Positions 10,561-63,431 of a stretch of DNA of 64,000 nt are shown piece after piece (within the stretch, counting starts at the first letter, position 1; each line of letters starts with the position of its first letter). Below the pieces are notes generated by a model. That model had not been told where the DNA came from. It saw nothing but the letters and a program-made list of their open reading frames with translations, and made no database searches. The position numbers and the translations under genes are program-made. Origin of the DNA: Macrostomum lignano (lineage: Eukaryota); the NCBI GenBank assembly GCA_002269645.1, contig NIVC01001291.1, positions 190,412 through 254,411 on the forward strand, read 5' to 3'.

Positions 10561-10595
10561 ACTTGTAACAGAATTGACTCTGATCTGGCGTCTTT

Positions 10596-17286: not shown

Positions 17287-17729
<443 letters not shown>

Positions 17730-18253
17730 GTACATAGATAGCACTCCAAGCGAACTCAGACAGTCAGCACCAAGTCCCAAAACTGCACCCAAACCCCTTT
17801 TCCCGGCTTCCAGGGATTCTGCAGCCAGTCTTGACTACAGCACCGGCAGCGGCGGCGGCAGCGGCGGCGGCAGCGGCAGAGGCGAAAACAGGATATCCCT
17901 TTTCCAGGAATTCGGCGTTAACGACCCCCTCACCGTGGAGATGGATTCGGACACGGCCGCCTTTCTGTAAGCCCCAAGCACAGCCCCCGCGCTAATGCGC
18001 CACTAAAAGGCATAAAACCGCTGCCGGCCCCGGCAAACAGCAAATTGGTGCCACTCCAACCGGATCGAATTGCCCACCTGTGCAAACAAGCCGTTAAAGC
18101 TTTCCCTAATCCTGTTTTGCCAACCAACACTAATTGGAGAGTCCGATTGCGTTCCAACAGATTGATGGGCAGATATTGAAAACGGGGATGCTTGAAGAGG
18201 GAAATATTGGGCTTGCTGAATAAACAAAAGGTATGGGATAGCATCGACTGCTG

Positions 18254-19290
18254 CTTTTGGTAGACACTCTACCAATGCTGATTTGGGTAGACACTCTACC
18301 AATGCTGTTTCGGGTAGACACTTTACCAATGCTGATTTGGGTAGACACTCTACCAATGCTGATTTAGGTAGACACTCTACCAATGCTGATATGGGTAGAC
18401 ACTCTACCAATGCTGATTTGGGTAGACACTCTACCAATGCTGATTTGGGTAGACACTCTACCAATGCTGATTTGGGTAGACACTCTACCAATGCTGATAT
18501 GGGTAGACACTCTACCAATGCTGATTTAGGTAGACACTCTACCAATGCTGATATGGGTACTGGTAAACACTCTAACAACGCTGATTTAGGTAGAAACTCT
18601 ACCAATGCTGATTTGGGTAGACACTACTCTACCAATGCTGATTTGGGTAGACACTCTACCAATGCTGATTTGGGTACTGGTAAACACTCTACCAATGCTG
18701 ATTTGGGTACTGGTGGACACTCTACCAATGCTGATTTGGGTACTGGTAGACACTCTACCAATGCTGATTTGGGTAGACACTACTCTACCAATGCTGATTT
18801 GGGTAGACACTCTACCAATGCTGATTTGGGTAGACACTCTACCAATGCTGATTTGGGTAGACACTCTACCAATGCTGATTTGGGTAGACACTCTACCAAT
18901 GCTGATTTGGGTAGACACTCTACCAATGCTGATTTGGGTAGACACTGCTCTACCAATGCTGATTTGGGTAGACACTCTACCAATGCTGTTTCGGGTAGAC
19001 ACTCTACCAATGCTGTTTCGGGTAGACACTCTACCAATGCTGTTTCGGGTAGACACTCTACCAATGCTTTTTGGGTACTGGTAGACACTCTACCAATGCT
19101 GATTTGGGTAGACACTACTCTGCCAATGCTGTTTCGGGTAGACACTCTACCAATGCTGATTTGGGTAGACACTACTCTACCAATGCTGATTTGGGTAGAC
19201 ACTCTACCAATGCTGATTTGGGTAGACACTACTCTACCAATGCTGATTTGGGTAGACACTCTACCGATGCTGTTTTGGGTAGACACTCTA
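18254..19290. repeat. 27-bp minisatellite GGGTAGACACTCTACCAATGCTGATTT with 30- and 33-bp variants
   Basis: About 36 copies; insertions of ACT or GGTACT; each unit contains the inverted repeat GGTAG-ACACT-CTACC. Confidence 0.96.
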
Positions 19291-20068
19291 CTGTTCAGGC
19301 AAGTCAGGTCAGTAGGATTTCTATTTGTTCCAAAGAAGTTCAAAGCAAAACTGCCTGTCAGTCAACCGCCTGCGGATATTTGCAGTTCAGCTGAAAATTT
19401 TTGTTTTCTTTTTTAGCGAAAAGAAAACACTCGAAGAGGTGAAGAAAAGTCAAAGGGGATTTAAAAAGAGTGCCGAATGAGGCCACAGGAAGGAATTTGA
19501 CTACACAGCCGGCCAGCTTCCCAGTTTGGAATTGGGAGCCGCGCGAGGTGCCTGTCGCGAATTTCTTCGCCCTAGCAACAACTGCGGCAGTGCACTTTCC
19601 AGCCGTTTGCCGCTCGGTGAAACAGCTTCGAAATCGAAGCGAAGTGTACAGAACAGAGCCTCATCTCCCATCCCCCACCCCAGGCTTGGAATGCGGCCAT
19701 TCCATTCTGCTCCCCAATGCCTCCTGTCCTCCTTCCTCTTCAGTCTGAGACAATTGCGTCCACTTATGACTTTTTTCGTTCCTTTTTTGTGCCTGTTTCT
19801 GCCTGTCTAACCTGGCCGACCCGGCATAGCAACAGTTGCTGTGCGCTGTGCTGCGCAGATATTAGAGCCCCCCCCACCATGCCTAACTATTAGGAAAGTA
19901 AGCTGCAAGTATGCAAGCTGTATCCACTTGAACCTGGCTGCTCGGGTCTGATATTTATAGATATACAACAAATGGGATATTTAGTGGCGCTGATAAAACA
20001 GTGTTGGGGCTTCAAAACTGAGTTTGGGGTTCTAGTTTCACCGTCCTAAATGGAGCTGAAACACAAAT

Positions 20069-21190
20069 AGGCGGCCAACAACAGGAACTAGGTGGCCAAC
20101 AACAGGAACCAGGCTGTCAACAACAGGAACTGAGCAACCAACAACAGGAACTAGGCTGTCAACAACAGGAACTGAGCAACCAACAACAGGAACTAGACAA
20201 CCAACAACAGGAACTAGGCGGCCAACAACAGGAACTAGGCGGCCAACAACAGGAACTAGGCAACCAACACCAGGAACTAGGCAACCAACACCAGGAACTA
20301 GGCAGTCAACAACAGGAACTAGGCGGCCAAGAACAGGAACTAGGCTGTCAACAACAGGAACTGAGCAGCCAACAACAGGAACTGAGCAATCAACAACAGG
20401 AACTGAGCAGCCAACAACAGGAACCTGAGCAGCCAACAACAGGAACCTGAGCAATCAACAACAGGAACTAGGCAGCCAACAACAGGAACTGGGCAATCAA
20501 CAACAGGAACTAGGCAGCCAACAACAGGAACTAGGCAGCCAACAACAGGAACTAGGCAACCAACACCAGGAACTAGGCAACCAACAACAGGAACTAGGCA
20601 ACCAACAACAGGAACTAGGCAACCAACACCAGGAACTAGGCAACCAACAACAGGAACTAGGCAACCAACAACAGGAACTAGGCGGCCAACAACAGGAGCT
20701 AGGCAACCAACAACAGGAACTAAGCAACCAACAACAGGAACTAGGCAACCAACAACAGGAACTAGGCAGCCAACAACAGGAACTAGGCAACCAACAACAG
20801 GAACTAGGCAGCCAACAACAGGAACTAAGCAACCAACAACAGGAACTAGGCAGCCAACAACAGGAACTAGGCAACCAACACCAGGAACTAGGCAACCAAC
20901 AACAGGAACTAGGCAACCAACAACAGGAACTAGGCAACCAACACCAGGAACTAGGCAACCAACAACAGGAACTAGGCAACCAACAACAGGAACTAGGCGG
21001 CCAACAACAGGAGCTAGGCAACCAACAACAGGAACTAAGCAACCAACAACAGGAACTAGGCAACCAACAACAGGAACTAGGCAGCCAACAACAGGAACTA
21101 GGCAACCAACAACAGGAACTAGGCAGCCAACAACAGGAACTAGGCAACCAACAACAGGAACTAGGCAACCAACAACAGGAACTGGGCAAT
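20069..21190. repeat. 21-bp minisatellite CAACAACAGGAACTAGGCAAC, about 53 copies
   Basis: 21-bp period; two 22-bp units near 20421-20450. Confidence 0.96.
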
Positions 21191-24649: not shown

Positions 24650-24985
24650 GTCATTAGGCTGGGCAACTCAAGCCACATTGAAGAGCCCCCAAAGCGTGCC
24701 TACTGGTCATTAGGCTGGGCAACTCAAGCCGCATTGAAGAGCCCCCAAAGCGTGCCTACTGGTCATTAGGCTGGGCAACTCAAGCCGCATTGAAGAGCCC
24801 CCAAAGCGTGCCTACTGTTCATTAGGCTGGGCAACTCAAGCCGCATTGAAGAGCCCCCAAAGCGTGCCTACTGGTCATTAGGCTGGGCAACTCAAGCCGC
24901 ATTGAAGAGCCCCCAAAGCGTGCCTACTGGTCATTAGGCTGGGCAACTCAAGCCGCATTGAAGAGCCCCCAAAGCGTGCCTACTG
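24650..24985. repeat. 56-bp tandem repeat, six near-perfect copies
   Basis: TCATTAGGCTGGGCAACTCAAGCC starts at 24651, 24707, 24763, 24819, 24875 and 24931; no spacers. Confidence 0.97.
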
Positions 24986-27980: not shown

Positions 27981-28404
27981 CCACCTCACTTCGCACACAC
28001 ACCTCACTCCTCACCCCCACCTCACTCCGCACACCCACCTCACTCCACACGCCCACCTCACTCCGCACACCCACCTCACTCCTCACGCCCACCTCACTCC
28101 ACACGCCCACCTCACTCCGCACACCCACCTCACTCCACACGCCCACCTCACTCCGCACACGCACCTCACTCCGCACACCCACCTCACTCCACACGCCCAC
28201 CTCACTCTACACACCCACCTCACTCCGCACACCCACCTCACTCCACACGCCCACCTCACTCTACACACCCACCTCACTCCGCACACCCACCTCACTCCAC
28301 ACGCCCACCTCACTCCGCACACCCACCTCACTCCTTACGCCCACCTCATTCCACACACCCACCTCACTCCGCACACCTACCTCACTCCACACACCCACCT
28401 CACT
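27981..28404. repeat. 18-bp intronic minisatellite CACCTCACTCCGCACACC
   Basis: About 23 copies inside the intron between SCHIP1 exons C and D. Confidence 0.95.
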
Positions 28405-32490: not shown

Positions 32491-34404
32491 ATGCTTTCTA
32501 ACACACGAAGCATGGAATCGGCAGAAGCGGCGCTGGCTGCTCTGGTCGATGACGACCCTGACGCCTTCATGCGAGCTTTGAAGCCGGACCTGTCGGGAAG
32601 GCTCGCCCAGCCTCTGGTCGACGTGACCGAAAGCCACGAGATCCGGTGTCGCTTGCCGAGAAGTCGCCGAAAGTGGGGCTTCGTCAGTCTGCAGTTCGGA
32701 TACGCGATCCACCTGGCGATTCTGCTGCAGTCCGTGCGAGTGTTCGAGGCTCTGTTGGAAGACAGCTCCGAGCACGCGGCTCAGCTCGAGCTCGACGGCA
32801 GCACCGTTGTACACAGTCTGGCTCGCTGCCAGATGTACGCGCCGAGGTTCAAGCGAGCCAAGCGTCTGGAGACGGCGCTCCTCTCGACGCTGAGTAGAGA
32901 GCCTCGTCTGCTAGACAGGCTGGTCACTCAGGAGGACTCGAGCGGTCTCCGACCTCTGGAGGCGTGCGTGAAGTTCGCTGCATTCCGACTGGCCCGCAAG
33001 ATGTTGCACCTGCCGAACTACCTGTTGAAATCGGAGACTCGATCCGGCGGCTGGGCCGTCTGTCTCTACGACCTCACCGACTACGACCTGTGTCACGGGA
33101 GCCGGTGCAACTCGAGTCCTCTGCACCTGCTCACCTATGTAGCGTCGAGTCAGGTCGAGTCGCTCAAGAAGTCCAAGCTGATGGAGGACCCTCTCATCCG
33201 ACAGTGGCTTCGGTTGACTAACCGTCAGACTCGAGCGATCACATTTCTGAGGCTGCTGGTGATGAGCGTTCCAACATCGGTATTTCTTCTTACAGCCGTG
33301 AACGAATCAATCATGCTGACGGTGGCCTGTTTTGGCAACCTCATTCACTGCAACCGAGCAACATTTTCTGCTGCAAAATCATTAGGATACAATGCGAGCG
33401 TTTTGAGCAATTTAACCATTTATTTTACGTTCTTTTATCAGCAAAAAATAAAGTCAAAAAGCTGTGCAGAATTTCTTCAATCCATCGACATAAACTTTCT
33501 GGTGATTAGTCTCGTGACTGCCTTCATGTGCGTCACTGCGGCTCTGAAGACTGGATTCTCTGCGCTTGAACACGAAAATAAGAAAAAAATATTGACTGCG
33601 GACAACTGGTCGCTGCTTGACAGATTTGTTCGACGGGCCATCTTTGATTTTTATCACTTTGTTGCAATCGCGAGTGGCATCTGCTTTCTAGTTGTCGCGA
33701 CGTTCCTGAGGTCCGATAATTTCTATGAAAATTTGTATCCAAGCGACCAGAGCAACGGTAGAGCTGTGGAGCAACTGTTCATTGGGTCCAACACTCTCTT
33801 CATCGCGTTCACGCTGCTACACTTTGCGCAGTACATGGAGATCGTGACGAAGTCGGTCGGGAAGCTCTTCTTCACCTTCCACTGCATGCTGTCCAGCTTC
33901 CTGGCCGCGCTGCCGCTGCTGTTCTACTGGATCATTCTCTTCAGCCTGGACTTCTTCATCTTGGTTGACTCGCCCGACTTCGAGACCGGCCTGTTGTCGC
34001 TCTACTCGTCGGTCAAGGTCATCCTCAACATGATCACCTTCAGCTTGGACAGCGTGATGGTTCTCATCATCCACGTGCTGTTCTTCGTGTTTGTGGGCCT
34101 CAACCTGCTGAACTTTCTCATCGCGTTCGTCACGGAGACGTTCCAGCGGTGCATCAGTGACTTCGATGTGGCCTTCGACCTGCTGCGACTTCTGACAGCG
34201 TTGAAGACGTTTCGGTACTTCGGGTTCGTGTTTCGGTGCAAGCACTGGCTCGAGGTGAGGTCTCACGGCAGCTGTAGACGGCGGGTTATCGTTGAGGTTG
34301 TTCAACCGGTGTTCAAGAGGCTGTACTCGAAAAGTGAATTCAAGCGGAAGCAGCAAAATTTTAGATCCTGTAGTCGAGAAATGGAATCTTTGCCGGATAT
34401 TTAA
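32491..34404 (+). CDS. TRPV-like cation channel, type A copy 1 (intact, 637 aa)
   Basis: Degenerate ankyrin repeats (DGSTVVHSLA; DSSGLRPLEAC), TRPV linker LYDLTDYD, six hydrophobic segments, pore helix ending ILNM, and S6 LNLLNFLIAFVTETF typical of TRPV LNMLIALMGET. Confidence 0.85.
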   Translation: MLSNTRSMESAEAALAALVDDDPDAFMRALKPDLSGRLAQPLVDVTESHEIRCRLPRSRRKWGFVSLQFGYAIHLAILLQSVRVFEALLEDSSEHAAQLELDGSTVVHSLARCQMYAPRFKRAKRLETALLSTLSREPRLLDRLVTQEDSSGLRPLEACVKFAAFRLARKMLHLPNYLLKSETRSGGWAVCLYDLTDYDLCHGSRCNSSPLHLLTYVASSQVESLKKSKLMEDPLIRQWLRLTNRQTRAITFLRLLVMSVPTSVFLLTAVNESIMLTVACFGNLIHCNRATFSAAKSLGYNASVLSNLTIYFTFFYQQKIKSKSCAEFLQSIDINFLVISLVTAFMCVTAALKTGFSALEHENKKKILTADNWSLLDRFVRRAIFDFYHFVAIASGICFLVVATFLRSDNFYENLYPSDQSNGRAVEQLFIGSNTLFIAFTLLHFAQYMEIVTKSVGKLFFTFHCMLSSFLAALPLLFYWIILFSLDFFILVDSPDFETGLLSLYSSVKVILNMITFSLDSVMVLIIHVLFFVFVGLNLLNFLIAFVTETFQRCISDFDVAFDLLRLLTALKTFRYFGFVFRCKHWLEVRSHGSCRRRVIVEVVQPVFKRLYSKSEFKRKQQNFRSCSREMESLPDI

Positions 34405-34614
34405 TGCATTCTTTTAGAGATTTTCGACGACTTTCTGAACGTTGTGCCCGTGCGCTTGCCCTGCCAAAGTGCACTCTGCTCCGTATTTGTTTTTGGTGTG
34501 ATAGGCTCGGCGGTGTAAGCCGCTTAGCCCTTTGGGTTGTCTGCGCGCTGGTTGGCTGGGCCGCCCTTTTCTTTTTGGCCTTCCTCCCGGGCTGGCCTCC
34601 CCCAGCTGCGCCGT

Positions 34615-34720
34615 GATTGGCCGGTGGGTGGCTGGGCCGGGGGTGGGGCGGGGGTGGGGCGGGGGGGAGCCCCCGGCTCCGGGAGGGTCGTGGCATTTTA
34701 AGGCGCGGCCGGGGCGGGTG
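34615..34720. other. GC-rich island with a CCAAT box, GC boxes and a G-quadruplex-type G-run cluster (also at ~41978-42085 and ~49342-49445)
   Basis: GATTGG at 34615-34620; G5-T-G4-C-G5-T-G4-C-G7 at 34639-34667; AATAAA at 34821 suggests it lies in the A-gene 3' UTR. Confidence 0.6.
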
Positions 34721-36045
34721 GCTGTCGGCCCGTGGTTGTGTTGGTTTGCCGCACTCTACAACGCAGGCCCAGAGCGCCGATTACAGCGTCTTTAGACCGT
34801 CCTTCCCCTAACACATACGCAATAAACGTTTACCATCGGGTCCGCCAGCCGCGAGCAGACCTCAGCTACGATTTATTGACCGCACGCGCAAGGGCGAGCT
34901 ATCCGCGAAGTAAGTCACTGCCTTGTCTCTTCATTTCGGGAGCTGTAGCAGGGACAGTCCGTGTGACCTGACGCCGACTCAGAGGGGACTAGGCCAGGTA
35001 GTCAGCTACGGGCCACCCTGTACTGTAAGCCCGCTGTACATAGACGCCAGTTTGTGCGCCCTGACGCCCTGCTAAAGGTGATCGACATCACAGCGTCCCT
35101 ACGCGTGTGCCGGCCACTTGGGTGCGTCCTGACGCCCCAGACCTAGGGTCCCGTGCGGACACTCGCGTCCCGACGCAGGCCAGCACGGGCCCGCGTACTC
35201 TGACCCTCGTAGGTGCACCATTCCTGAGAGTCGCGAGTACAACATGAACCTTAGAGCGCAAAACAATATTGCAGTTTCATATTTATGCGTCATTCGTTTT
35301 GCAATATTTTCCTTTGCAAAAGTCCCATCCCATATCTCTTTCAAATGTGTTTTCTTAAAGTTTTTCTGGAAACCTTTTAAATCTTGGATTAACTTCTCTG
35401 CTGCTTTGAAGTGGCCCTTATTGTACTACGTGTAATTCCTTTACAATCGGTAAATTATTGTACAAGCGTCGTAATCTACTATAAAAATTCTAAGCGCGAT
35501 TCTGTGATAAGCATCCAAGAGTCGCTAGGAGCAAGTGCTAATTTCATCATTTAGTATTTCGGTACAACCTTTAATTGATTGCTATAAACTGCCAATAAAT
35601 ATTGAACGTCCCAGCCTTTTATCTAACCTTCATTTGTAACCTTCCAAATTGGTCGGTACGTACGCTCGTAGCAATAGCTGCTGAACATTCGCCTTCCAGG
35701 GTTTATAATGAAGCTGGTTTCACTCACGGGTGAAAACTACTCGTAGTACTCAACAGAAACTTACGATTAAATAGTTGAATATACGAGCGTATGTTGGCTC
35801 AAAGTACGTTTTATTCGTGAATGCAAAATATTCAAGCAGTGTACTCGTAGATGTACGGACTGAGACGGGAGAAAACCAAGGTAAACGACACAGCATTCTG
35901 CGCAATGACTAAGCAGTATGGAGAAATATTAGGAAAGCTGAATCGCCTGCCTCTAATCAAGTTAATCCAGCTAAACATCGCGAATCAAGCTTCCAAACAA
36001 AGGATTTTGCCACGAAGGTATTCGCAGGTTTAGACGATTAGGACA

Positions 36046-37984
36046 TTATTGCCTTTTAAAAGCCGGTTGAACAACTTCAACGACCACCCGACGTCTGCAG
36101 ATGCCATGAGATCTCACTTCTAGCCAGTGATTGCACCGGGGTACAAACTTAAAGTACCGAAACGTCTTCAGCGCTGCCAGAAGCCGCAGCAGGTCGAACG
36201 CCACGTCGAAATCGCTGATGCACCGCTGGAACGTCTCTGTGACAGACGCTATGAGAAAGTTCAACAGGTTGATGCTGACAAACATAAAGAATGCGAAATG
36301 AATAATGAGAACGATGGAACTGTCTAGGTTGAAGTTGATCATGTTCAGTATGACTCTCACGGATGAATACAAAGATAGAGAACCAGTGCTAAAGTCTTGC
36401 GTGTCAACCAGGATGAAGAAAATCAAGCTAAACAAAATTATCCAAAAGTAAAGCAGAGGCATGGAAGCCAGGAAACTTGTCATCATGCTGTGAAATATGA
36501 AAAACAGTTTCCCAATGCCTCTTGATACAATCTCCAAATACTGGGAATACTGCAAGAGAACGGATGCGATAAATAAAGCATTCGAGCCGAGAAACAGCTG
36601 CTCAGTGACCCAGTGACCGCTGGTTGATGGGGAGCAGTGTCCGGTACCACCCTGAGTAGTTCGCCCAAAAGTTGGTGAACAGAACAACTAGGAAGCAGGA
36701 GCTGCTGCCAATAGTTACTGCCAGGTAAACGTCGAACATGGTTCTACGGACGAATCGGTGCGTGGGTCGCCAGTTGTCGGCTGTGAGAAGCTTCATCCGC
36801 TGACTCCGCTCCAGGAGCCGCAGAACAATCTTCACGCAGGCTACGATGACTTTGAAGACCAGAACCGCAAAAATCACACAGGTGTTTACAAATATTGCCT
36901 CGCCGATTCTTGAGCACTTAGTCTGCTTAACTGTCTGATCATTAAACACTTTCCAAAAGAGGGTTGAGTTCAACAACACGGTCTCATTGAAGCCTAGCTT
37001 CTCTGCGGCTGTGAAGGTGGCTTGATTACAGTGAATCAGCAAACCAAAACTTGATACAAGTAGCATTACATATTGGCTAAACACCGTCAACAAAAATGCT
37101 GCTGGCGGTATGCCCATCACCAACAGCCTCAGAAATGTGATCGCTCGAGTCTGACGGTACGTCAACCGAAGCCACTGTCGGATGAGAGGGTCCTCCATCA
37201 GCTTGGACTTCTTGAGTGACTCGACCTGACTCGACGCTACATAGGTGAGCAGGTGCAGAGGACTCGAGTTGCACCGGCTCCCGTGACACAGGTCGTAGTC
37301 GGAGAGGTCGTAGAGACGGACGGCCCAGCCGCCGGATCGAGTCTCCGATTTCAACAGATAGTTCGGCAGGTGCAACATCTTGCGGGCCAGTCGGAATGCA
37401 GCGAACTTCACGCACGCCTCCAGAGGTCGGAGACCGCTCGAGTCCTCCTGAGTGACCAGCCTGTCTAGCAGACGAGGCTCTCTACTCAGCGTCGAGAGGA
37501 GCGCCGTCTCCAGACGCTTGGCTCGCTTGAACCTCGGCGCGTACATCTGGCAGCGAGCCAGACTGTGTAAAACGGTGCTGCCGTCGAGCTCGAGCTGAGC
37601 CGCGTGCTCGGAGCTGTCTTCCAACAGAGCCTCGAACACTCGCACGGACTGCAGCAGAATCGCCAGGTGGATCGCGTATCCGAACTGCAGACTGACGAAG
37701 CCCCACTTTCGGCGACTTCTCGGCAAGCGACACCGGATCTCGTGGCTTTCGGTCACGTCGACCAGAGGCTGGGCGAGCCTTCCCGACAGGTCCGGCTTCA
37801 AAGCTCGCATGAAGGCGTCAGGGTCGTCATCGACCAGAGCAGCCAGCGCCGCTTCTGCCGATTCCATGCTTTGTTTCCGTTCCCGAATCATGTTTGCACT
37901 TTTTGGTGCCTTCTGCTGCGTTTCGATTTGCTTTAAAATTTCTCGCATACCGAAGTCAGCCAGAAGTGTTTTATCTGCGTCCAC
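36046..37984 (-). pseudogene. TRPV-like channel type B copy 1, frameshifted (net -2 bp near 36613)
   Basis: Split into ORFs 36602-37984 and 36046-36687. It has CCCAGTGACCGC where intact B2/B3 have CCCAGCCAGACCGC. Confidence 0.8.
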
Positions 37985-38755
37985 TATATTTGCCTTTCCA
38001 CTTTGAAACAGTGTAAGAGAATAAGAGTCATGGTCTATGAGAACCGCTCCCTGGCCTTCAGCCCGTCTGTCAGTAGCCCAGCTGACTTCCCAAACGGCTC
38101 TGAATGCAGTGCTCCCCTGAATTCCTGGGCAACCCCTGGGCGTTGTCTTCCTATTTAGACTTGAGTTTAGCAGCTGTCCTCTCAGGCGCTCCAGTTGAAC
38201 GGGTCCGATATTCAGTTTTAAACTCGTATTAGTCTCGAGCTATTGAATGAGTTCGTTTTCAAATTTAAAGTAGAATTTACCACTAACACACATCGGCTTC
38301 GTCGAAAGTTACTAGGATCTGGAGACAGAAATACAATATGCTTTATCACTCAATCGAAAGTGTTGTATTGATGGTTGTCTCGGGGTGGTTTGGTAGGTCT
38401 TCAGAATCCCATCGCTGCCACCAATGTTGTACCTGTGCTACCTACTCGGACAGCGCCAGCACAGTTAAATTGACTTTTCGTCCTTTTGATCGGGAGTCTT
38501 CAATCGTAGCGTAGCTAGTGCTGCCACCAGTTCCTTCAGGTCTCGGCTTTCGATGAGGTGGGCTTCCCGTCGGAACAAAATAAACAAGTAAACGAACTCA
38601 GCACCGCGTGCAGATTTGAAGATTAACGAACAAGGCGTCTGGTCAGCAGATCCAGCTGGGCCCAGTGGGTGGTTGGGAAGGCGATGTAGGCCTCCTTTAG
38701 ACTTGGGCGTCTATGTTTAGTCAGGCGTATTACAGACGGAAACATGGTAGCAGAA

Positions 38756-38962
38756 GAACTGAAACTGAAAGTGAAATCCTTGACGGAAACAAGGGTGAGG
38801 GGGCCCCGTACATATATGCTGGGAATCCCCATTGCACCATTGTGCGCCAGATAGCGTGACTCAGTATCTATTTTTAGAACTGACGTCACCTCCCGCCTTT
38901 GAGAAGGCCGGGGTCGTGATCCCCGTAAACACAGGCCAGCGAGTGTAGTAAACATGTTTACT
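38756..38962. promoter_or_regulatory. Motif cluster at the centre of the divergent B1/A2 spacer (IRF-, kB-, AP-1-, CRE- and Forkhead-type)
   Basis: GAAACTGAAAGTGAAA 38761-38776; GGGAATCCCC 38821-38830; TGACTCA 38857-38863; TGACGTCA 38881-38888; GTAAACA 38925-38931; palindrome AGTAAACATGTTTACT 38947-38962. Function is inferred from motif matches only. Confidence 0.5.
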
Positions 38963-39755
38963 CCAGGACTCCAGGACTTTTGGACTCCAGGAAAACACGG
39001 CTTTTCATGTGACTTGCTCAAATGACAGAGGAAAACAGGACCACCAATAGTGACCTCAAGACTGGAGTAAAAGGAAGAGCAGACCACAGCACAGATGTCC
39101 ATGGCTGCAAACACGGCTTGGAGATTGGAGCTCGTAGACAAGTTTTCGTCGGTTTTTAAAACAGTCAAGAAATTTGTTGCTAGACTTGAGCTATTGCCAG
39201 TTCCCTTGATTGAATCTTGATTATCGAGATTTAAACTTAAATTTGCATGCTAAAAAGCTCAAATACGGAGATGCCTTTCTGGAACCGGATCGTTACTCAA
39301 TTCAACGGCTAAAAAATTCAACCATAGTTTTTAATATCATATACGTGCAAATTTTTGCTGGAGAGCCGTTGCTTTTCAGACTGGCTCCCAAAAAAGTTCC
39401 ACTGCAATAGAGACTCAGGCTATGCAGAAATGAGTTACATAGCACTATTGGGCTACTTTCTTCGTCAAATCAATTCATTTGATAATGTTGTTTGCTCTGC
39501 GCCCTCGAGACCATACCAAGGACAACTAAGGACCATACTTGCCTGACTGTATCGCCAGAACTGACTCTAGTTCAGTGGCCTTTGTTTGTTCAGGCTGGTC
39601 AAATGTTTTGGAGAAAAATGTACACTTGTGACCAGCGATTCCCTGTATATTGATTTGCTGGCAGCTATACTTTGCAAAGCTCATAAAAGCAGCGCACCAG
39701 AAAACTAACAGAGATCGGACTGATTCTGCGGCAAACTGTTCAGCTGCACAAAGTA

Positions 39756-41773
39756 ATGGGCGAAGGGATCCCGGCTACTAACGACTTTATCAGAGTTCGC
39801 TCCAGCAACAGAATTTCACTTCTTGCAGGTAATCGGGTGCTGCCGAGTCAGAACGATACAAACTTGAAAGAGTTGTTCAACATGGAATCAGCAGAGGCGG
39901 CGCTGGCTGCTCTGGTCGATGACGACCCTGACGCCTTCATGCGAGCTTTGAAGCCGGACCTGTCGGGAAGGCTCGCCCAGCCTCTGGTCGACGTGACCGA
40001 AAGCCACGAGATCCGGTGTCGCTTGCCGAGAAGTCGCCGAAAGTGGGGCTTCGTCAGTCTGCAGTTCGGATACGCGATCCACCTGGCGATTCTGCTGCAG
40101 TCTGTGCGAGTGTTCGAGGCTCTGTTGGAAGACAGCTCCGAGCACGCGGCTCAGCTCGAGCTCGACGGCAGCACCGTTGTACACAGTCTGGCTCGCTGCC
40201 AGATGTACGCGCCGAGGTTCAAGCGAGCCAAGCGTCTGGAGACGGCGCTCCTCTCGACGCTGAGTAGAGAGCCTCGTCTGCTAGACAGGCTGGTCACTCA
40301 GGAGGACTCGAGCGGTCTCCGACCTCTGGAGGCGTGCGTGAAGTTCGCTGCATTCCGACTGGCCCGCAAGATGTTGCACCTGCCGAACTATCTGTTGAAA
40401 TCGGAGACTCGATCCGGCGGCTGGGCCGTCCGTCTCTACGACCTCACCGACTACGACCTGTGTCACGGGAGCCGGTGCAACTCGAGTCCTCTGCACCTGC
40501 TCACCTATGTAGCGTCGAGTCAGGTCGAGTCGCTCAAGAAGTCCAAGCTGATGGAGGACCCTCTCATCCGACAGTGGCTTCGGTTGACGTACCGTCAGAC
40601 TCGAGCGATCACATTTCTGAGGCTGTTGGTAATGAGCGTTCCAACATCGGTATTTCTTCTCACAGCCGTGAACGAATCAATCATGCTGACGGTGGCCTGT
40701 TTTGGCAACCTCATTCACTGCAACCGAGCAACATTTTCTGCTGCAAAATCATTAGGATTCAATGCCAGCGTTTTGAGCAATTTAACCATTTATTTTAAGT
40801 TTTTTTATCAGCAAAAAATAAAGTCAAAAAGCTGTGCAGAATTTCTTGAATCCGTCGACATAAACTTTCTGGTGATTAGTCTCGTGACTGCCTTCATGTG
40901 CGTCACTGCGGCTCTGAAGACTGGATTCTCTGCGCTTGAACACAAAAATAAGAAAAAATATTGACTGCGGACAACTGGTCGCTGCTTGACAGATTTGTTC
41001 GACGGGCCATCTTTGATTTTTATCACTTTGTTGCAATCGCGAGTGGCATCTGCTTTCTAGTTGTCGCGACGTTCCTGAGGTCCGATAATTTCTATGAAAA
41101 TTTGTATCCAAGCGACCAAAGCAACGGTAGAGCTGTGGAGCAACTGTTCATTGGGTCCAACACTCTCTTCATCGCGTTCACACTGCTGCACTTTGCGCAG
41201 TACATGGAGATCGTGACGAAGTCGGTCGGGAAGCTCTTCTTCACCTTCCACTGCATGCTGTCCAGCTTCCTGGCCGCGCTGCCGCTGCTGTTCTACTGGA
41301 TCATTCTCTTCAGCCTGGACTTCTTCATCTTGGTCGACTCGCCCGACTTCGAGACCGGCCTGTTGTCGCTCTACTCGTCGGTCAAGGTCATCCTCAACAT
41401 GATCACCTTCAGCTTGGACAGCGTAATGGTTCTCATCATCCACGTGCTGTTCTTCGTGTTTGTGGGCCTCAACCTGCTGAACTTTCTCATCGCGTTCGTC
41501 ACGGAGACGTTCCAGCGGTGCATCAGCGACTTCGATGTGGCCTTCGACCTGCTGCGACTTCTGACAGCGTTGAAGACGTTTCGGTACTTCGGGTTCGTGT
41601 TTCGGTGCAAGCACTGGCTCGAGGTGAGGTCTCACGGCAGCTGTAGACGTCGGGTTATCGTTGATGTTGTTCAACCGGTGTTCAAGAGGCTGTACTCGAA
41701 AAGTGAATTCAGGCGGAAGCAGCGAAATTTTAGATCCTGTAGTCGAGAGATGGAATCTTTGCCGGATATTTAA
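39756..41773 (+). pseudogene. TRPV-like channel type A copy 2, 1-bp frameshift in an A-run
   Basis: A6 at 40953-40958 versus A7 at 33583-33589 in A1; split into ORFs 39756-40964 and 40961-41773. Confidence 0.78.
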
Positions 41774-43408
41774 TGCATTCTTTTAGAGATTTTCGACGAC
41801 TTTCTAAATTTTGTGCCCGTGCGCTTGCCCTGCCAAAGTGCACTCTGCTCCGTATTTGTTTTTGATGTGATAGGCTCAGCGGTGTAAGCCGCTTAGCCCT
41901 TGGGTTGTCTGCGCGCTGGTTGGCTGGGCCGCCCTGTTTGGCCCTCCTCCCGGGCTGCCCTCCCCCAGCTGCGCCGTGATTGGCCGGTGGGTGGCTGGGC
42001 CGGGGGTGGGGCGGGGGTTGGGGCGGGGGGGAGCCCCCGGCCCCGGGGGGTCGTGGCCTTTTAAGGCGCGGCCGGGGCGGGTGGCTGTCGGCCCGTGGTT
42101 GTGTTGGTTTGCCGCACTCTACAACGCAGGCCCAGAGCGCCGATTACAGCGTCTTTAGACCGTCCTTCCCCTAACACATACGCAATAAACGTTGACCATC
42201 GGGTCCGCCAGCCGCGAGCAGACCTCAGCTACGATTTATTGACCGCACGCGCAAGGGCGAGCTATCCGCGAAGTAAGTCACTGCCTTGTCTCTTCATTTC
42301 GGGAGCTGTAGCAGGGACATTCCGTGTGTCCTGACGCCGACTCAGGGTGGACTAGGTCAGGTAGTCAGCTAGGGGCCACCCTGTACTGTAAGCCCGCTGT
42401 ACATAGACGCCAGCTTGTGTGCCCTGACGCCCTGCTAAAGGTGATCGACATCACAGCGTCCCTAAGCGTGTGCCGGCCACTTGGGTGCGCCCTGACGCCC
42501 CAGACCTAGGGTCCCGTGCGGACACTCGCGCCCCGACGCAGGCCAGCACGGGCCCGCGTACTCTGACCCTCGTAGGTGCACCCTTCCTGAGAGTCGCGAG
42601 TACAACATGAACCTTAGAGCGCAAAACAACATTGCAGTTTCATATTTATGCGTCATTCGTTTTACACTATTTTCCTTTGCAAAAGTCCCATCCCATATCT
42701 CTTTCAAATGTGCTTTCTTAAAGTTTTTCTGGAAACCTTTTAAATCTTGGATTAACTTCTCTGCTGCTTTGAAGTGGCCCTTATTGTACTACGTGTAATT
42801 CCTTTACAATCGGTAAATTATTGTACAAGCGTCGTAATCTACTATAAAAATTCTAAGCGCGATTCTGTGATAAGCATCCAAGAGTCGCTAGGAGCAAGTG
42901 CTAATTTCGTCATTTAGTATTTCGGTACAACCTTTAATTGATTGCTATAAACTGCCAATAAATATTGAACGTCTCAGCCTTTTATCTAACCTTCATTTGT
43001 AACCTTCCAAATTGGTCGGTACGTACGCTCGTAGCAATAGCTGCTGAACACTCGCCTTCCAGGGTTTATAATGAAGCTGATTTCACTCGCGGGTGAAAAC
43101 TACTCGTAGTACTCAACAGAAACTTACGATTAAATAGTTGAATATACGAGCGTATGTTGGCTCAAAGTACGTTTTATTCGTGAATGCAAAATATTCAAGC
43201 AGTGTACTCGTAGATGTACGGACTGAGACGGGAGAAAACCGAGGTAAACGACACAACATTCTGCGCAATGACTAAGCAGTATGGAGAAATATTAGGAAAG
43301 CTGAATCGCCTGCCTCTAATCAAGTTAATTCAGCTAAACATCGCGAATCAAGCTTCTAAACAAAGGATTTTGCCATGAAGGTGTTCGCTGGTTTAGACGA
43401 TTAGGACA

Positions 43409-45349
43409 TTATTGCCTTTTAAAAGCCGGTTGAACAACTTCAACGACCACCCGACGTCTGCAGATGCCATGAGATCTCACTTCTAGCCAGTGATTGCACC
43501 GGGGTACAAACTTAAAGTACCGAAACGTCTTCAGCGCTGCCAGAAGCCGCAGCAGGTCGAACGCCACGTCGAAATCGCTGATGCACCGCTGGAACGTCTC
43601 CGTGACAGACGCTATGAGAAAGTTCAACAGGTTGATGCTGACAAACATAAAGAATGCGAAATGAATAATGAGAACGATGGAACTGTCTAGGTTGAAGTTG
43701 ATCATGTTCAGTATGACTCTCACGGATGAATACAAAGATAGAGAACCAGTGCTAAAGTCTTGCGTGTCAACCAGGATGAAGAAAATCAAGCTAAACAAAA
43801 TTATCCAAAAGTAAAGCAGAGGCATGGAAGCCAGGAAACTTGTCATCATGCTGTGAAATATGAAAAACAGTTTCCCAATGCCTCTTGATACAATCTCCAA
43901 ATACTGGGAATACTGCAAGAGAACGGATGCGATAAATAAAGCATTCGAGCCGAGAAACAGCTGCTCGGTGACCCAGCCAGACCGCTGGTTGATGGGGAGC
44001 AGTGTCCGGTACCACCCTGAGTAGTTCGCCCAAAAGTTGGTGAACAGAACAACTAGGAAGCAGGAGCTGCTGCCAATAGTTACTGCCAGGTAAACGTCGA
44101 ACATTGTTATACGGACGAATCGGTGCGTGGGTCGCCAGTTGTCGGCTGTGAGAAGCTTCATCCGCTGACTCCGCTCCAGGAGCCACAGAACAATCTTCAC
44201 GCAGGCTACGATGACTTTGAAGACCAGAACCGCAAAAATCACACAGGTGTTTACAAATATTGCCTCGCCGATTCTTGAGCACTTAGTCTGCTTAACTGTC
44301 TGATCATTAAACACTTTCCAAAAGAGGGTTGAGTTCAACAACACGGTCTCATTGAAGCCTAGCTTCTCTGCGGCTGTGAAGGTGGCTTGATTACAGTGAA
44401 TCAGCAAACCAAAACTTGATACAAGTAGCATTACATATTGGCTAAACACCGTCAACAAAAATGCTGCTGGCGGTATGCCCATCACCAACAGCCTCAGAAA
44501 TGTGATCGCTCGAGTCTGACGGTACGTCAACCGAAGCCACTGTCGGATGAGAGGGTCCTCCATCAGCTTGGACTTCTTGAGTGACTCGACCTGACTCGAC
44601 GCTACATAGGTGAGCAGGTGCAGAGGACTCGAGTTGCACCGGCTCCCGTGACACAGGTCGTAGTCGGAGAGGTCGTAGAGACGGACGGCCCAGCCGCCGG
44701 ATCGAGTCTCCGATTTCAACAGATAGTTCGGCAGGTGCAACATCTTGCGGGCCAGTCGGAATGCAGCGAACTTCACGCACGCCTCCAGAGGTCGGAGACC
44801 GCTCGAGTCCTCCTGAGTGACCAGCCTGTCTAGCAGACGAGGCTCTCTACTCAGCGTCGAGAGGAGCGCCGTCTCCAGACGCTTGGCTCGCTTGAACCTC
44901 GGCGCGTACATCTGGCAGCGAGCCAGACTGTGTAAAACGGTGCTGCCGTCGAGCTCGAGCTGAGCCGCGTGCTCGGAGCTGTCTTCCAACAGAGCCTCGA
45001 ACACTCGCACGGACTGCAGCAGAATCGCCAGGTGGATCGCGTATCCGAACTGCAGACTGACGAAGCCCCACTTTCGGCGACTTCTCGGCAAGCGACACCG
45101 GATCTCGTGGCTTTCGGTCACGTCGACCAGAGGCTGGGCGAGCCTTCCCGACAGGTCCGGCTTCAAAGCTCGCATGAAGGCGTCAGGGTCGTCATCGACC
45201 AGAGCAGCCAGCGCCGCTTCTGCCGATTCCATGCTTTGTTTCCGTTCCCGAATCATGTTTGCACTTTTTGGTGCCTTCTGCTGCGTTTCGATTTGCTTTA
45301 AAATTTCTCGCATACCGAAGTCAGCCAGAAGTGTTTTATCTGCGTCCAC
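43409..45349 (-). CDS. TRPV-like cation channel, type B copy 2 (intact)
   Basis: 646-aa ORF; same N-terminal block as type A, diverged TM region, S6 INLLNFLIASVTETF. First ATG near 45313; a pyrimidine-rich acceptor-like site lies just upstream. Confidence 0.85.
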   Translation of the reverse strand: MDADKTLLADFGMREILKQIETQQKAPKSANMIRERKQSMESAEAALAALVDDDPDAFMRALKPDLSGRLAQPLVDVTESHEIRCRLPRSRRKWGFVSLQFGYAIHLAILLQSVRVFEALLEDSSEHAAQLELDGSTVLHSLARCQMYAPRFKRAKRLETALLSTLSREPRLLDRLVTQEDSSGLRPLEACVKFAAFRLARKMLHLPNYLLKSETRSGGWAVRLYDLSDYDLCHGSRCNSSPLHLLTYVASSQVESLKKSKLMEDPLIRQWLRLTYRQTRAITFLRLLVMGIPPAAFLLTVFSQYVMLLVSSFGLLIHCNQATFTAAEKLGFNETVLLNSTLFWKVFNDQTVKQTKCSRIGEAIFVNTCVIFAVLVFKVIVACVKIVLWLLERSQRMKLLTADNWRPTHRFVRITMFDVYLAVTIGSSSCFLVVLFTNFWANYSGWYRTLLPINQRSGWVTEQLFLGSNALFIASVLLQYSQYLEIVSRGIGKLFFIFHSMMTSFLASMPLLYFWIILFSLIFFILVDTQDFSTGSLSLYSSVRVILNMINFNLDSSIVLIIHFAFFMFVSINLLNFLIASVTETFQRCISDFDVAFDLLRLLAALKTFRYFKFVPRCNHWLEVRSHGICRRRVVVEVVQPAFKRQ

Positions 45350-46120
45350 TATATTTGCCTTTCCACTTTGAAACAGTGTAAGAGAATAAGAGTCATGGTC
45401 TATGAGAACCGCTCCCTGGCCTTCAGCCCGTCTGTCAGTAGCCCAGCTGACTTCCCAAACGGCTCTGAATGCAGTGCTCCCCTGAATTCCTGGGCAACCC
45501 CTGGGCGTTGTCTTCCTATTTAGACTTGAGTTTAGCAGCTGTCCTCTCAGGCGCTCCAGTTGAACGGGTCCGATATTCAGTTTTAAACTCGTATTAGTCT
45601 CGAGCTATTGAATGAGTTCGTTTTCAAATTTAAAGTAGAATTTACCACTAACACACATCGGCTTCGTCGAAAGTTACTAGGATCTGGAGACAGAAATACA
45701 ATATGCTTTATCACTCAATCGAAAGTGTTGTATTGATGGTTGTCTCGGGGTGGTTTGGTAGGTCTTCAGAATCCCATCGCTGCCACCAATGTTGTACCTG
45801 TGCTACCTACTCGGACAGCGCCAGCACAGTTAAATTGACTTTTCGTCCTTTTGATCGGGAGTCTTCAATCGTAGCGTAGCTAGTGCTGCCACCAGTTCCT
45901 TCAGGTCTCGGCTTTCGATGAGGTGGGCTTCCCGTCGGAACAAAATAAACAAGTAAACGAACTCAGCACCGCGTGCAGATTTGAAGATTAACGAACAAGG
46001 CGTCTGGTCAGCAGATCCAGCTGGGCCCAGTGGGTGGTTGGGAAGGCGATGTAGGCCTCCTTTAGACTTGGGCGTCTATGTTTAGTCAGGCGTATTACAG
46101 ACGGAAACATGGTAGCAGAA

Positions 46121-46327
46121 GAACTGAAACTGAAAGTGAAATCCTTGACGGAAACAAGGGTGAGGGGGCCCCGTACATATATGCTGGGAATCCCCATTGC
46201 ACCATTGTGCGCCAGATAGCGTGACTCAGTATCTATTTTTAGAACTGACGTCACCTCCCGCCTTTGAGAAGGCCGGGGTCGTGATCCCCGTAAACACAGG
46301 CCAGCGAGTGTAGTAAACATGTTTACT
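46121..46327. promoter_or_regulatory. Second copy of the divergent-spacer motif cluster
   Basis: Same motifs at a +7365 offset (for example TGACGTCA at 46246). Confidence 0.5.
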
Positions 46328-47120
46328 CCAGGACTCCAGGACTTTTGGACTCCAGGAAAACACGGCTTTTCATGTGACTTGCTCAAATGACAGAGGAAAA
46401 CAGGACCACCAATAGTGACCTCAAGACTGGAGTAAAAGGAAGAGCAGACCACAGCACAGATGTCCATGGCTGCAAACACGGCTTGGAGATTGGAGCTCGT
46501 AGACAAGTTTTCGTCGGTTTTTAAAACAGTCAAGAAATTTGTTGCTAGACTTGAGCTATTGCCAGTTCCCTTGATTGAATCTTGATTATCGAGATTTAAA
46601 CTTAAATTTGCATGCTAAAAAGCTCAAATACGGAGATGCCTTTCTGGAACCGGATCGTTACTCAATTCAACGGCTAAAAAATTCAACCATAGTTTTTAAT
46701 ATCATATACGTGCAAATTTTTGCTGGAGAGCCGTTGCTTTTCAGACTGGCTCCCAAAAAAGTTCCACTGCAATAGAGACTCAGGCTATGCAGAAATGAGT
46801 TACATAGCACTATTGGGCTACTTTCTTCGTCAAATCAATTCATTTGATAATGTTGTTTGCTCTGCGCCCTCGAGACCATACCAAGGACAACTAAGGACCA
46901 TACTTGCCTGACTGTATCGCCAGAACTGACTCTAGTTCAGTGGCCTTTGTTTGTTCAGGCTGGTCAAATGTTTTGGAGAAAAATGTACACTTGTGACCAG
47001 CGATTCCCTGTATATTGATTTGCTGGCAGCTATACTTTGCAAAGCTCATAAAAGCAGCGCACCAGAAAACTAACAGAGATCGGACTGATTCTGCGGCAAA
47101 CTGTTCAGCTGCACAAAGTA

Positions 47121-49138
47121 ATGGGCGAAGGGATCCCGGCTACTAACGACTTTATCAGAGTTCGCTCCAGCAACAGAATTTCACTTCTTGCAGGTAATCG
47201 GGTGCTGCCGAGTCAGAACGATACAAACTTGAAAGAGTTGTTCAACATGGAATCAGCAGAGGCGGCGCTGGCTGCTCTGGTCGATGACGACCCTGACGCC
47301 TTCATGCGAGCTTTGAAGCCGGACCTGTCGGGAAGGCTCGCCCAGCCTCTGGTCGACGTGACCGAAAGCCACGAGATCCGGTGTCGCTTGCCGAGAAGTC
47401 GCCGAAAGTGGGGCTTCGTCAGTCTGCAGTTCGGATACGCGATCCACCTGGCGATTCTGCTGCAGTCTGTGCGAGTGTTCGAGGCTCTGTTGGAAGACAG
47501 CTCCGAGCACGCGGCTCAGCTCGAGCTCGACGGCAGCACCGTTGTACACAGTCTGGCTCGCTGCCAGATGTACGCGCCGAGGTTCAAGCGAGCCAAGCGT
47601 CTGGAGACGGCGCTCCTCTCGACGCTGAGTAGAGAGCCTCGTCTGCTAGACAGGCTGGTCACTCAGGAGGACTCGAGCGGTCTCCGACCTCTGGAGGCGT
47701 GCGTGAAGTTCGCTGCATTCCGACTGGCCCGCAAGATGTTGCACCTGCCGAACTACCTGTTGAAATCGGAGACTCGATCCGGCGGCTGGGCCGTCTGTCT
47801 CTACGACCTCACCGACTACGACCTGTGTCACGGGAGCCGGTGCAACTCGAGTCCTCTGCACCTGCTCACCTATGTAGCGTCGAGTCAGGTCGAGTCGCTC
47901 AAGAAGTCCAAGCTGATGGAGGACCCTCTCATCCGACAGTGGCTTCGGTTGACGTACCGTCAGACTCGAGCGATCACATTTCTGAGGCTGTTGGTAATGA
48001 GCGTTCCAACATCGGTATTTCTTCTCACAGCCGTGAACGAATCAATCATGCTGACGGTGGCCTGTTTTGGCAACCTCATTCACTGCAACCGAGCAACATT
48101 TTCTGCTGCAAAATCATTAGGATTCAATGCCAGCGTTTTGAGCAATTTAACCATTTATTTTAAGTTTTTTTATCAGCAAAAAATAAAGTCAAAAAGCTGT
48201 GCAGAATTTCTTGAATCCGTCGACATAAACTTTCTGGTGATTAGTCTCGTGACTGCCTTCATGTGCGTCACTGCGGCTCTGAAGACTGGATTCTCTGCGC
48301 TTGAACACAAAAATAAGAAAAAATATTGACTGCGGACAACTGGTCGCTGCTTGACAGATTTGTTCGACGGGCCATCTTTGATTTTTATCACTTTGTTGCA
48401 ATCGCGAGTGGCATCTGCTTTCTAGTTGTCGCGACGTTCCTGAGGTCCGATAATTTCTATGAAAATTTGTATCCAAGCGACCAAAGCAACGGTAGAGCTG
48501 TGGAGCAACTGTTCATTGGGTCCAACACTCTCTTCATCGCGTTCACACTGCTGCACTTTGCGCAGTACATGGAGATCGTGACGAAGTCGGTCGGGAAGCT
48601 CTTCTTCACCTTCCACTGCATGCTGTCCAGCTTCCTGGCCGCGCTGCCGCTGCTGTTCTACTGGATCATTCTCTTCAGCCTGGACTTCTTCATCTTGGTC
48701 GACTCGCCCGACTTCGAGACCGGCCTGTTGTCGCTCTACTCGTCGGTCAAGGTCATCCTCAACATGATCACCTTCAGCTTGGACAGCGTAATGGTTCTCA
48801 TCATCCACGTGCTGTTCTTCGTGTTTGTGGGCCTCAACCTGCTGAACTTTCTCATCGCGTTCGTCACGGAGACGTTCCAGCGGTGCATCAGCGACTTCGA
48901 TGTGGCCTTCGACCTGCTGCGACTTCTGACAGCGTTGAAGACGTTTCGGTACTTCGGGTTCGTGTTTCGGTGCAAGCACTGGCTCGAGGTGAGGTCTCAC
49001 GGCAGCTGTAGACGTCGGGTTATCGTTGATGTTGTTCAACCGGTGTTCAAGAGGCTGTACTCGAAAAGTGAATTCAGGCGGAAGCAGCGAAATTTTAGAT
49101 CCTGTAGTCGAGAGATGGAATCTTTGCCGGATATTTAA
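47121..49138 (+). pseudogene. TRPV-like channel type A copy 3, same 1-bp frameshift as copy 2
   Basis: A6 at 48318-48323; split into ORFs 47121-48329 and 48326-49138. Confidence 0.78.
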
Positions 49139-63311: not shown

Positions 63312-63431
63312 CTAGAGGGCAATTTTAGTCTTTTAAGGCTTTGCTTCAAGGACTCTTAGAAGTTAATGTGTTGACATTGTCGGTTTCCAACAGAGAAGCG
63401 CATGAATGCGACACATCAGCATCGATGCTAC

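Follow-up and report, generated by a model that had tools for sequence, protein, structure and literature searches.

Introduction

Gene conversion from arm to arm in inverted repeats and palindromes, for example those of the human Y chromosome, is a non-reciprocal intrachromatid exchange that keeps the arms ~99% or more identical, and non-allelic homologous recombination (NAHR) builds tandem arrays with chimeric junction genes, as in the opsin and globin clusters. The clustered protocadherins of fugu and zebrafish undergo regional gene conversion (PMC1852091, citing Noonan et al. 2004). The locus described here, a cluster of predicted TRPV-like cation-channel genes of Macrostomum lignano, belongs to this well-known kind of phenomenon, in which tandem gene families undergo regional conversion and evolve in concert, and extends it to an invertebrate TRPV-like family that is uncharacterised. 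It lies in a stretch of 64,000 nucleotides (positions 190,412 to 254,411, forward strand, of contig NIVC01001291.1, assembly GCA_002269645.1), which we call the window and within which all positions below are counted. A first-pass annotation had proposed that repeated ectopic conversion homogenises the N-terminal part of these genes between inverted paralogues and stops in the first transmembrane helix, S1. Our analysis indicates that the first 753 coding bases of the three gene types in the cluster, A, B and C, are probably kept in concerted evolution by ectopic homologous recombination.

Seven Genes Share a Sharply Bounded 753-bp Block

Seven paralogous intronless open reading frames (ORFs) occupy 32.5-56.1 kb of the window, A1, A2, A3 and C on the + strand and B1, B2 and B3 on the - strand. 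By their sequences, A, B and C appear to be three anciently diverged types of TRPV-like cation-channel gene:

32512-34404, + strand: gene A1, intact predicted TRPV-like channel gene, 630 amino acids counting from MESAE
36046-37867, - strand: gene B1, broken by a 2-bp deletion near 36614
39882-41773, + strand: gene A2, frame lost at an A7-to-A6 homopolymer change near 40952-40964
43409-45232, - strand: gene B2, intact, 607 amino acids
47247-49138, + strand: gene A3, with a homopolymer frameshift identical to that of A2 (48317-48329)
50774-52597, - strand: gene B3, intact
54325-56121, + strand: gene C, intact; a mosaic that is A-like except for a cassette from the S1-S2 loop to S3 (~55180-55561) and the C-terminal tail

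The shared block comprises codons 1-251, from the ATG of MESAE (32512) through ..RLLVM, and aligns without gaps in 7/7 copies:

32512-33264, + strand: block copy of A1, codons 1-251, covering ankyrin repeats, beta-hairpin/linker, pre-S1 and the first ~10 residues of S1
37867-37115, - strand: block copy of B1, inverted; forms a 753-bp inverted repeat with A2, with a 2014-bp spacer between
39882-40634, + strand: block copy of A2, a chimera, C-like at sites 9 and 15 and A-like from site 510 on
45232-44480, - strand: block copy of B2, identical to that of B1
47247-47999, + strand: block copy of A3
52597-51845, - strand: block copy of B3, with four private substitutions
54325-55077, + strand: block copy of C, in which identity to A continues to 55179 (codon ~285, end of S1)

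The interval given by the first-pass annotation for the homogenised tract, 32508-33264, was right: it opens four bases ahead of the MESAE ATG and closes with codon 251. The near-identity of A, B and C that it described from MESAE to RLLVM is borne out as well. Only 16 of the 753 sites vary, pairwise differences number 0-10, and identity is ~99% across all seven copies and both strands. No site within the block carries a fixed difference between + and - copies (0/753), vs 45/90 bp upstream and 37/90 bp downstream. The upstream flanks of A1, of A2/A3/C and of B are mutually unrelated, with 24-27% ungapped identity. Distances within a type (2-9 differences; A1-A2 9, A1-A3 7, B1-B3 7) are no smaller than those between types (5-10), and the block has no type structure.

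Synonymous divergence is far from uniform along the gene; it was uniformity that had been named as speaking against conversion. Between A1 and B2, synonymous divergence (dS) is 0.021 within the block, vs a saturated proportion of synonymous differences (pS) of 0.757 in the remainder (Nei-Gojobori), and the outcome is the same for C-B2. The abrupt change reported after RLLVM is real for A against B, where the maximum chi-square breakpoint of A1/B2 falls exactly at nucleotide (nt) 753 (chi2 333), but not for C, whose identity to A outlasts the A-B block by about 100 bp (to 33366 / 55179; A1/C breakpoint at nt 851). The block does stop in S1, ending ~10 residues into the first transmembrane helix as judged by alignment with S1 of TRPV6. 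A Sawyer-type longest-concordant-run test on A and B gave p 0.07, the block adding few polymorphic sites to the condensed alignment, and maximum chi-square is the appropriate breakpoint test here. Non-reciprocal exchange between paralogues, inverted ones included, is the only good explanation for these features of the 753-bp block.

The 5' border was also considered as a splice acceptor or the edge of a mobile element. This was rejected: the ATG is preceded by AAGC in A1 and B vs CAAC in A2/A3/C, no common AG stands before it, and no inverted repeats were found in the flanks of this border.

Three of the seven copies are disrupted (A2, A3 and B1). The A7-to-A6 change of A2 and A3 may be either a real mutation, making pseudogenes, or a sequencing error, while the B1 lesion (36604-36633) is a complex change, a 2-bp deletion with adjacent substitutions and without a homopolymer slip. 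Ahead of the common MESAE methionine, every type has an in-frame ATG or ORF extension peculiar to it, at 32491-32511, 37868-37984 and 39756-39881, with lengths of 7, about 8-39 and 42 codons, respectively. A tblastn search of the 64-kb window returned no block copies beyond the seven.

The Block as a Probable Substrate for Unequal Crossover

Self-comparison resolved the genes into a tandem array:

32511-55179, no strand: tandem array of 7365-7370-bp units
32511-39880, no strand: array unit U1
39881-47245, no strand: array unit U2
47246-54323, no strand: array unit U3
From 54324, no strand: partial array unit U4, ending at 55179
44185-44246, no strand: breakpoint interval of a second unequal crossover, leftward of which U2 equals U3 and rightward of which it equals U1; the U1 equivalent is 36820-36881

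Each unit holds one A gene and one inverted B gene. The left edge of the array is the start of the block in A1 (32511), and its right edge lies just beyond the block in C (55179). A2, A3 and C have their upstream 1.5 kb in common (97.9%), and that of A1 is unique. A2 and A3 carry C's upstream region and C states at sites 9 and 15 of the block, yet have an A body and A states from site 510. These junctions point to an unequal crossover between direct A and C block copies as the founder of the 7.37-kb array, with an exchange point between sites 15 and 510.

A later event can be read from the units themselves. Differences between U1 and U2 are confined to columns 9-4327 of the unit alignment, with identity over 4328-7389, and U2 and U3 hardly differ as far as column 4387 but do so beyond it. 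This shows U2 to be a recombinant, formed when two units later underwent unequal crossover at a point inside the B gene body and outside the block. Given the clean recombinant structure of U2, the third unit arose from this crossover in the B gene body. Following the first duplication, an intact A was retained by one unit and an intact B by the other.

Three head-to-head spacers of 2 kb lie between the inverted blocks of each B gene and the A or C gene that follows it (37868-39881, 45233-47246 and 52598-54324). All three have the same orientation, and the B3-C spacer has deletions of 267 bp and 22 bp relative to the others. A crossover from arm to arm would invert such a spacer, exchanging the two upstream regions.

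The Patchwork of Variable Sites

The distribution of states at the 16 variable sites can be sorted by the event that would account for it:

Sites 9 and 15, A1 and B vs A2, A3 and C: founding unequal crossover, no conversion
Sites 298 and 565, B1 and B2 alone: ordinary mutations on the unit lineage
Sites 222 and 750, A2 and A3 alone: ordinary mutations on the unit lineage
Sites 318, 650, 663 and 738, B3 alone: private changes
Sites 708 and 709, A1 alone: private changes
Sites 510 and 550, A2 unlike A3: conversion patch
Site 651, shared by C, B1 and B2: CpG transition; further exchange or recurrent mutation
Site 745, base C in A1 and in copy C, T in A2, A3 and B: further exchange or recurrent mutation
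40391-40431, + strand: minimal extent of the conversion patch in A2, where sites 510 and 550 of the tract have the B state

The shared states listed by the first-pass annotation all agree with the alignment: TCG GCA GAA in A1 and all B copies (sites 9, 15), TAC-CTG in A1 and A3 only (site 510), VRLY in A2 and B as opposed to VCLY in A1, A3 and C (site 550), TCA in C, B1 and B2 (site 651), and TVVH and DLTD in B3 and all + copies (sites 298, 565). Its reading of this patchwork as the mark of repeated ectopic conversion fared less well. It stands for one patch, 510/550 in A2, but not for 9/15, 298/565 or 222/750, and 651 and 745 are ambiguous.

The A2 patch makes a convincing case for a short conversion tract younger than the latest duplication. 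Across the A gene, A2 and A3 differ by substitutions at sites 510 and 550 only, 41 bp apart, and at both A2 carries the state of all B copies. The unit halves that hold A2 and A3 have 5 differences in 4388 aligned columns, which besides 510/550 are two indels and one substitution, and the probability of such a pattern arising by chance was estimated at ~0.001-0.003. The most parsimonious donor is an inverted B copy. Flanking markers bound the length of the patch, which is no less than 41 bp and no more than about 266-330 bp.

The block as a whole also departs from a tree-like history. Fifteen of 45 informative site pairs fail the four-gamete test, with a minimum number of recombination events (Rm) of 3; the best of all 945 trees requires 4 extra steps (homoplasies), and 12/16 variable sites fit the tree of unit history. 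In simulations, the probability of at least 4 double hits was 4e-5 under uniform rates, and 0.003 and 0.007 under tenfold and twentyfold CpG hypermutability, respectively. CpG transitions account for 4/10 informative sites, and the locus has an observed/expected (o/e) CpG ratio of 0.98, that is, no CpG depletion. Hypermutability of CpG was accordingly rejected as the full source of the patchwork (P <=0.003-0.007) and is possible for site 651. An apparent excess of variation between B2 and B3 in the tract (7 vs 2 differences) was likewise rejected, the unit crossover breakpoint accounting for it: only the 5' 1 kb of B2 belongs to the other unit type. With only two conflicts left once the unequal crossover and one patch are allowed for, support for many conversion events is moderate.

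Second Block and Other Traces of Exchange

Types A and C share a further homogenised region:

33767-34318, + strand: second homogenised block, A and C only, from S4 to the TRP helix; partner 55562-56113, and also 41136-41687 and 48501-49052

This second block is 96.6% identical overall, with a core of 98.8% (1.2% divergent), and 13/19 of its mismatches lie at its two edges. Between the two homogenised regions, A and C are separated by a cassette of ~400 bp (S1-S2 loop to S3) in which dS is saturated and the nonsynonymous divergence (dN) is 0.5-0.7. Variation in the 753-bp block is also heaviest near its edges: of the 16 variable sites, 11 fall within the final 250 bp and 2 within the opening 15 bp (Kolmogorov-Smirnov p 0.02-0.03), as expected if tracts must begin and finish within homology.

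Base composition follows the same division. The G+C content at third codon positions (GC3), a measure likewise applied to protocadherin clusters (PMC1852091), is 0.76 in the 753-bp tract vs 0.46-0.56 in S1-S4. In the second block, where the comparison was restricted to codons with the same amino acid in A and B, GC3 is 0.85 in A, 0.87 in C and 0.58 in B (p 9e-7), and strong and weak differences number 44 vs 7. GC3 in this block ranges over 0.85-0.98, vs 0.54-0.68 in B. Both the raised GC3 and the edge-heavy variation fit conversion. Finally, A and B are 86-92% identical in nucleotide sequence at the end of S6 and the TRP helix (~34084-34220; in B e.g. ~43600-43740, - strand), with third-position identity of 73-83% vs 30-50% elsewhere, which suggests either an older, decayed conversion tract or constraint at the codon level.

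The Encoded Proteins

Direct searches with the A1 protein gave no match in Pfam, in a word-indexed search of 5.8 billion proteins or among PDB sequences, and no Pfam model reached threshold on the window proteins themselves. An exhaustive profile search retrieved 128 remote relatives of similar length; the 1.84 billion cluster representatives searched, which stand for ~15 billion proteins, included no close relative (best E 2.9e-15, ~20% identity). Some of these remote relatives have Pfam Ion_trans, PKD_channel and ankyrin matches, and those with names, all uncharacterised, come from the nemertean Lineus longissimus and the annelid Ridgeia piscesae. A profile of 40 sequences matches TRPV6 (E 1.1e-42) and TRPV5 over nearly their full length, followed by TRPV3, TRPV2 and TRPV1. 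Its alignment with TRPV6 spans chain residues 164-613, with the ankyrin repeats aligning from residue 164, and the profile also aligns with designed ankyrin-repeat proteins.

Structure prediction made use of that same alignment. AlphaFold2 (AF2) run on the four paralogues alone gave a mean predicted local distance difference test score (pLDDT) of 33.7 and was unusable, while the 40-sequence alignment gave a pLDDT of 79.5 and a predicted template-modelling score (pTM) of 0.79. The best Foldseek matches of the latter model are TRPV6/1/3/5, with template-modelling (TM) scores of 0.5-0.6. The predicted fold consists of ankyrin repeats, a beta-hairpin linker, pre-S1, S1-S6, a TRP-like helix and a C-terminal beta-strand, the model having helix pairs at 65-165, a beta-hairpin at 172-187 and a helix at 227-262. 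The first hydrophobic segment, residues 242-275 (AITFLRLLVM|SVPTSVFLL..., the bar marking the end of the block), aligns with S1 of TRPV6. After S6, a helix aligns with the TRP helix of TRPV6, and the corresponding stretch, FDVAFDLLRLL, is without tryptophan. The fingerprint table for TRPVL has A, not W, at the last fingerprint position, and TRPVL has been recorded from cnidarians and annelids (PMC9242649). On profile and model evidence, the genes are predicted to encode TRPV-like channels of the TRPV/TRPVL/TRPA1 clade (group I TRP).

All three types present the same cytoplasmic N-terminal domain (ankyrin repeats, linker and pre-S1) on very different S1-S4 regions. Between types the pore is semi-conserved, and the TRP helix and C-terminal strand are conserved. 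Variation within the block has a ratio of nonsynonymous to synonymous differences per site (pN/pS) of ~0.15, which places the N-terminal domain under ordinary purifying selection.

How the Block May Have Been Maintained

Under the explanation we favour, a double-strand break in one copy would be repaired from another copy 2-22 kb off, direct or inverted, so that short non-reciprocal tracts of tens to a few hundred bp are copied. Exchange would be halted at two homology cliffs, one at the ATG, where the 5' flanks are unrelated, and one past codon 251, where S1-S4 has diverged. Both borders would thereby be self-maintaining, since exchange needs near-identity, and they are perhaps reinforced by selection for distinct sensor domains. 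For the base-sharp 3' border common to the copies, such a cliff is the best explanation. The block would have doubled as a crossover substrate, the direct A by C event producing the array and leaving A2 and A3 with C's promoter side and A's body, and the later unequal crossover inside a unit adding the third.

That conversion has been repeated is likely, with one strong and two weak events and the indirect signatures pointing to it, and several observations weigh against it. Between-type divergence in the block (0.8-1.3%) is not significantly below the divergence between array units (1-1.7%), so repetition is likely rather than proven. Most of the data could be accounted for by a single episode of homogenisation, at around the time the array was founded, and one later patch. 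Beyond the crossover and the A2 patch, just two conflicting sites are left (651 and 745), and these could be recurrent mutations. A common, base-sharp 3' boundary is unexpected from many independent tracts with random ends. The GC3 of the 753-bp tract is confounded with the contrast between membrane and soluble protein regions, a confound of which the second block is free. In addition, consensus or polishing mixing among 99%-identical copies may be the source of some mosaic SNPs.

On a rival view, the N-terminal module was copied once into the three gene types, through a chimeric duplication or one or two long conversions, near the time of array formation and has diverged since, with the patchwork left by the crossover, lineage mutations, one patch and recurrent mutations. 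Between-type divergence (6-10/753) that equals unit divergence, a 3' boundary identical to the base in all copies, the fit of most variable sites (12/16) to unit history and the ability to account for sites 9/15, 298/565 and 222/750 without conversion all favour such a single event. It would nonetheless require a coincidence: saturated dS makes the genes at least about 50-100 times as old as the block, yet the event would be timed with the array. The A2 patch marks an exchange later than the latest duplication, the edge-heavy variation and raised GC3 of two separate blocks suggest many events, and the second A-C block together with the partly decayed A-B block at the TRP helix speaks for exchange at several places and times. 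On balance we regard a single copying event as unlikely. Still less likely is that the mosaic SNPs, and perhaps even the number of units, come from mixed reads laid over a block that is truly repeated. Seven ~99%-identical copies in 7.4-kb tandem units are difficult to polish, and the homopolymer-length frameshift of A2 and A3 is typical of sequencing error. Set against this, the units differ outside the block in an orderly way and their recombinant breakpoints are clean; most tract SNPs track unit history; the complex 2-bp change of B1 is unlike a homopolymer slip; and polishing cannot yield an identical block beside a saturated remainder on both strands with unrelated flanks.

It is hardly credible that extreme purifying selection on the nucleotides themselves, for example in an overlapping RNA or DNA element, has held ancient paralogues identical without exchange. 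The protein is constrained (pN/pS ~0.15), and nothing specific favours this idea. Synonymous sites are as invariant as nonsynonymous ones over 251 codons, with dS at 0.02 beside adjacent saturation, and Rfam gave no match. Physical exchange is instead indicated by the mosaic SNPs and by the chimeric A2 and A3.

The Rest of the Window

With many minisatellites and long intronless ORFs, the window has a eukaryotic look. Its first 28 kb are mostly long mini- and microsatellite arrays with strong strand-composition skews and spurious ORFs in all frames:

640-6817, no strand: mini-/microsatellite arrays, from the sequence, as are the eight intervals below
7290-7710, no strand: mini-/microsatellite arrays
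10053-11061, no strand: mini-/microsatellite arrays
11927-15628, no strand: mini-/microsatellite arrays
17287-17741, no strand: mini-/microsatellite arrays
18249-19291, no strand: mini-/microsatellite arrays
20068-21189, no strand: mini-/microsatellite arrays
24650-24985, no strand: mini-/microsatellite arrays
27981-28404, no strand: mini-/microsatellite arrays

Examples are a 15/21/36-bp unit, CTGACACTGACATCA, over 6 kb, a 35-bp unit in ~106 copies, and (TAGA)114. Downstream of gene C, two arrays of a 14/29-bp unit, CGACGTTTGCCAGC, lie in opposite orientation (57276-57768 and 58746-59166) around ~980 bp, and together these CGACGTTTGCCAGC arrays make up a large imperfect inverted repeat. An ORF of 753 amino acids at 61088-63349 (- strand) has Ser/Ala-rich low-complexity regions and a weak, sub-threshold match to a MYND zinc finger (E 0.048), and is probably an unrelated neighbouring gene. 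Rfam gave no relevant match on the window, and Pfam gave nothing relevant on the ORFs of the spacers and flanks.

Possible Functional Consequences

In solved TRPV channels, the ankyrin domain and the beta-sheet formed by the linker and C-terminus make inter-subunit contacts, and in known TRPV channels the S1-S4 region houses ligand- and lipid-binding pockets. By analogy, it is reasonable to suppose that homogenisation keeps the subunits compatible for heteromers, as the first-pass annotation had suggested. A neutral by-product of recombination between nearby repeats fits the data equally well. More speculatively, the cluster might work as a system of constant module and variable sensor, in which selection acting through recombination keeps one cytoplasmic N-terminal domain the same in every channel type, together with its expected docking partners (the conserved TRP helix and C-terminal strand). 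Subunits with different S1-S4 cassettes could then co-assemble as mixed tetramers, multiplying sensory specificities, and inversion of the spacers could swap promoters. We consider this whole scheme improbable.

The locus is a clean, small case of how recombination can divide a gene family into one homogenised module and others that diverge freely. The borders are sharp to the base and coincide with structural landmarks, namely the start codon, the middle of S1 and the beginning of S4. The locus further draws attention to an uncharacterised lophotrochozoan TRPV-like family whose paralogues differ almost only in S1-S4. If S1-S4 holds the sensor pockets, A, B and C would be natural chimeras for sensor mapping and co-assembly tests. 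Phylogenies and orthology calls for these genes must leave out the homogenised blocks.

Comparison With Known Systems

As channels, the window proteins resemble TRPV and TRPVL in their near-full-length profile match to TRPV6/5/3/2/1 and in having relatives in an annelid and a nemertean (PMC9242649). They differ in that the family is only ~15-20% identical to any database protein. Compared with TRPV they have a shorter N-terminus and fewer ankyrin repeats, and no tryptophan was seen in their TRP-helix stretch.

As a gene family, they come close to the teleost protocadherins (PMC1852091). There too, tandem paralogues have a >99% identical region beside a strongly divergent one, synonymous sites are homogenised and GC3 is higher in the homogenised part, and a constant part is joined to a variable recognition or sensor part. 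Here, however, the gene encodes a predicted TRPV-like ion channel, not an adhesion receptor, and the homogenised part is the 5' end, encoding the cytoplasmic N-terminus. In further contrast, some copies are inverted, the array is tiny (7 copies, 3 disrupted), and there are no constant exons and no splicing.

The Y-chromosome palindromes are matched in that inverted copies lie a few kb apart, each B gene forming with the A gene of the next unit a 753-bp inverted repeat around a 2-kb spacer. Unlike palindrome arms, those here are only portions of two genes that otherwise differ, and they stop at homology cliffs inside coding sequence, and direct copies participate too.

With the NAHR of opsin and globin clusters, the locus has in common that the unit length of the array matches the spacing of two direct repeats, that the junction copies A2 and A3 are chimeric (C upstream, A body) and that a later crossover would have given a recombinant middle unit. 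What sets it apart is the mediating repeat, which appears to be a conversion-homogenised gene segment common to otherwise dissimilar genes, so that the same segment that is homogenised is also the crossover substrate that built the tandem array.

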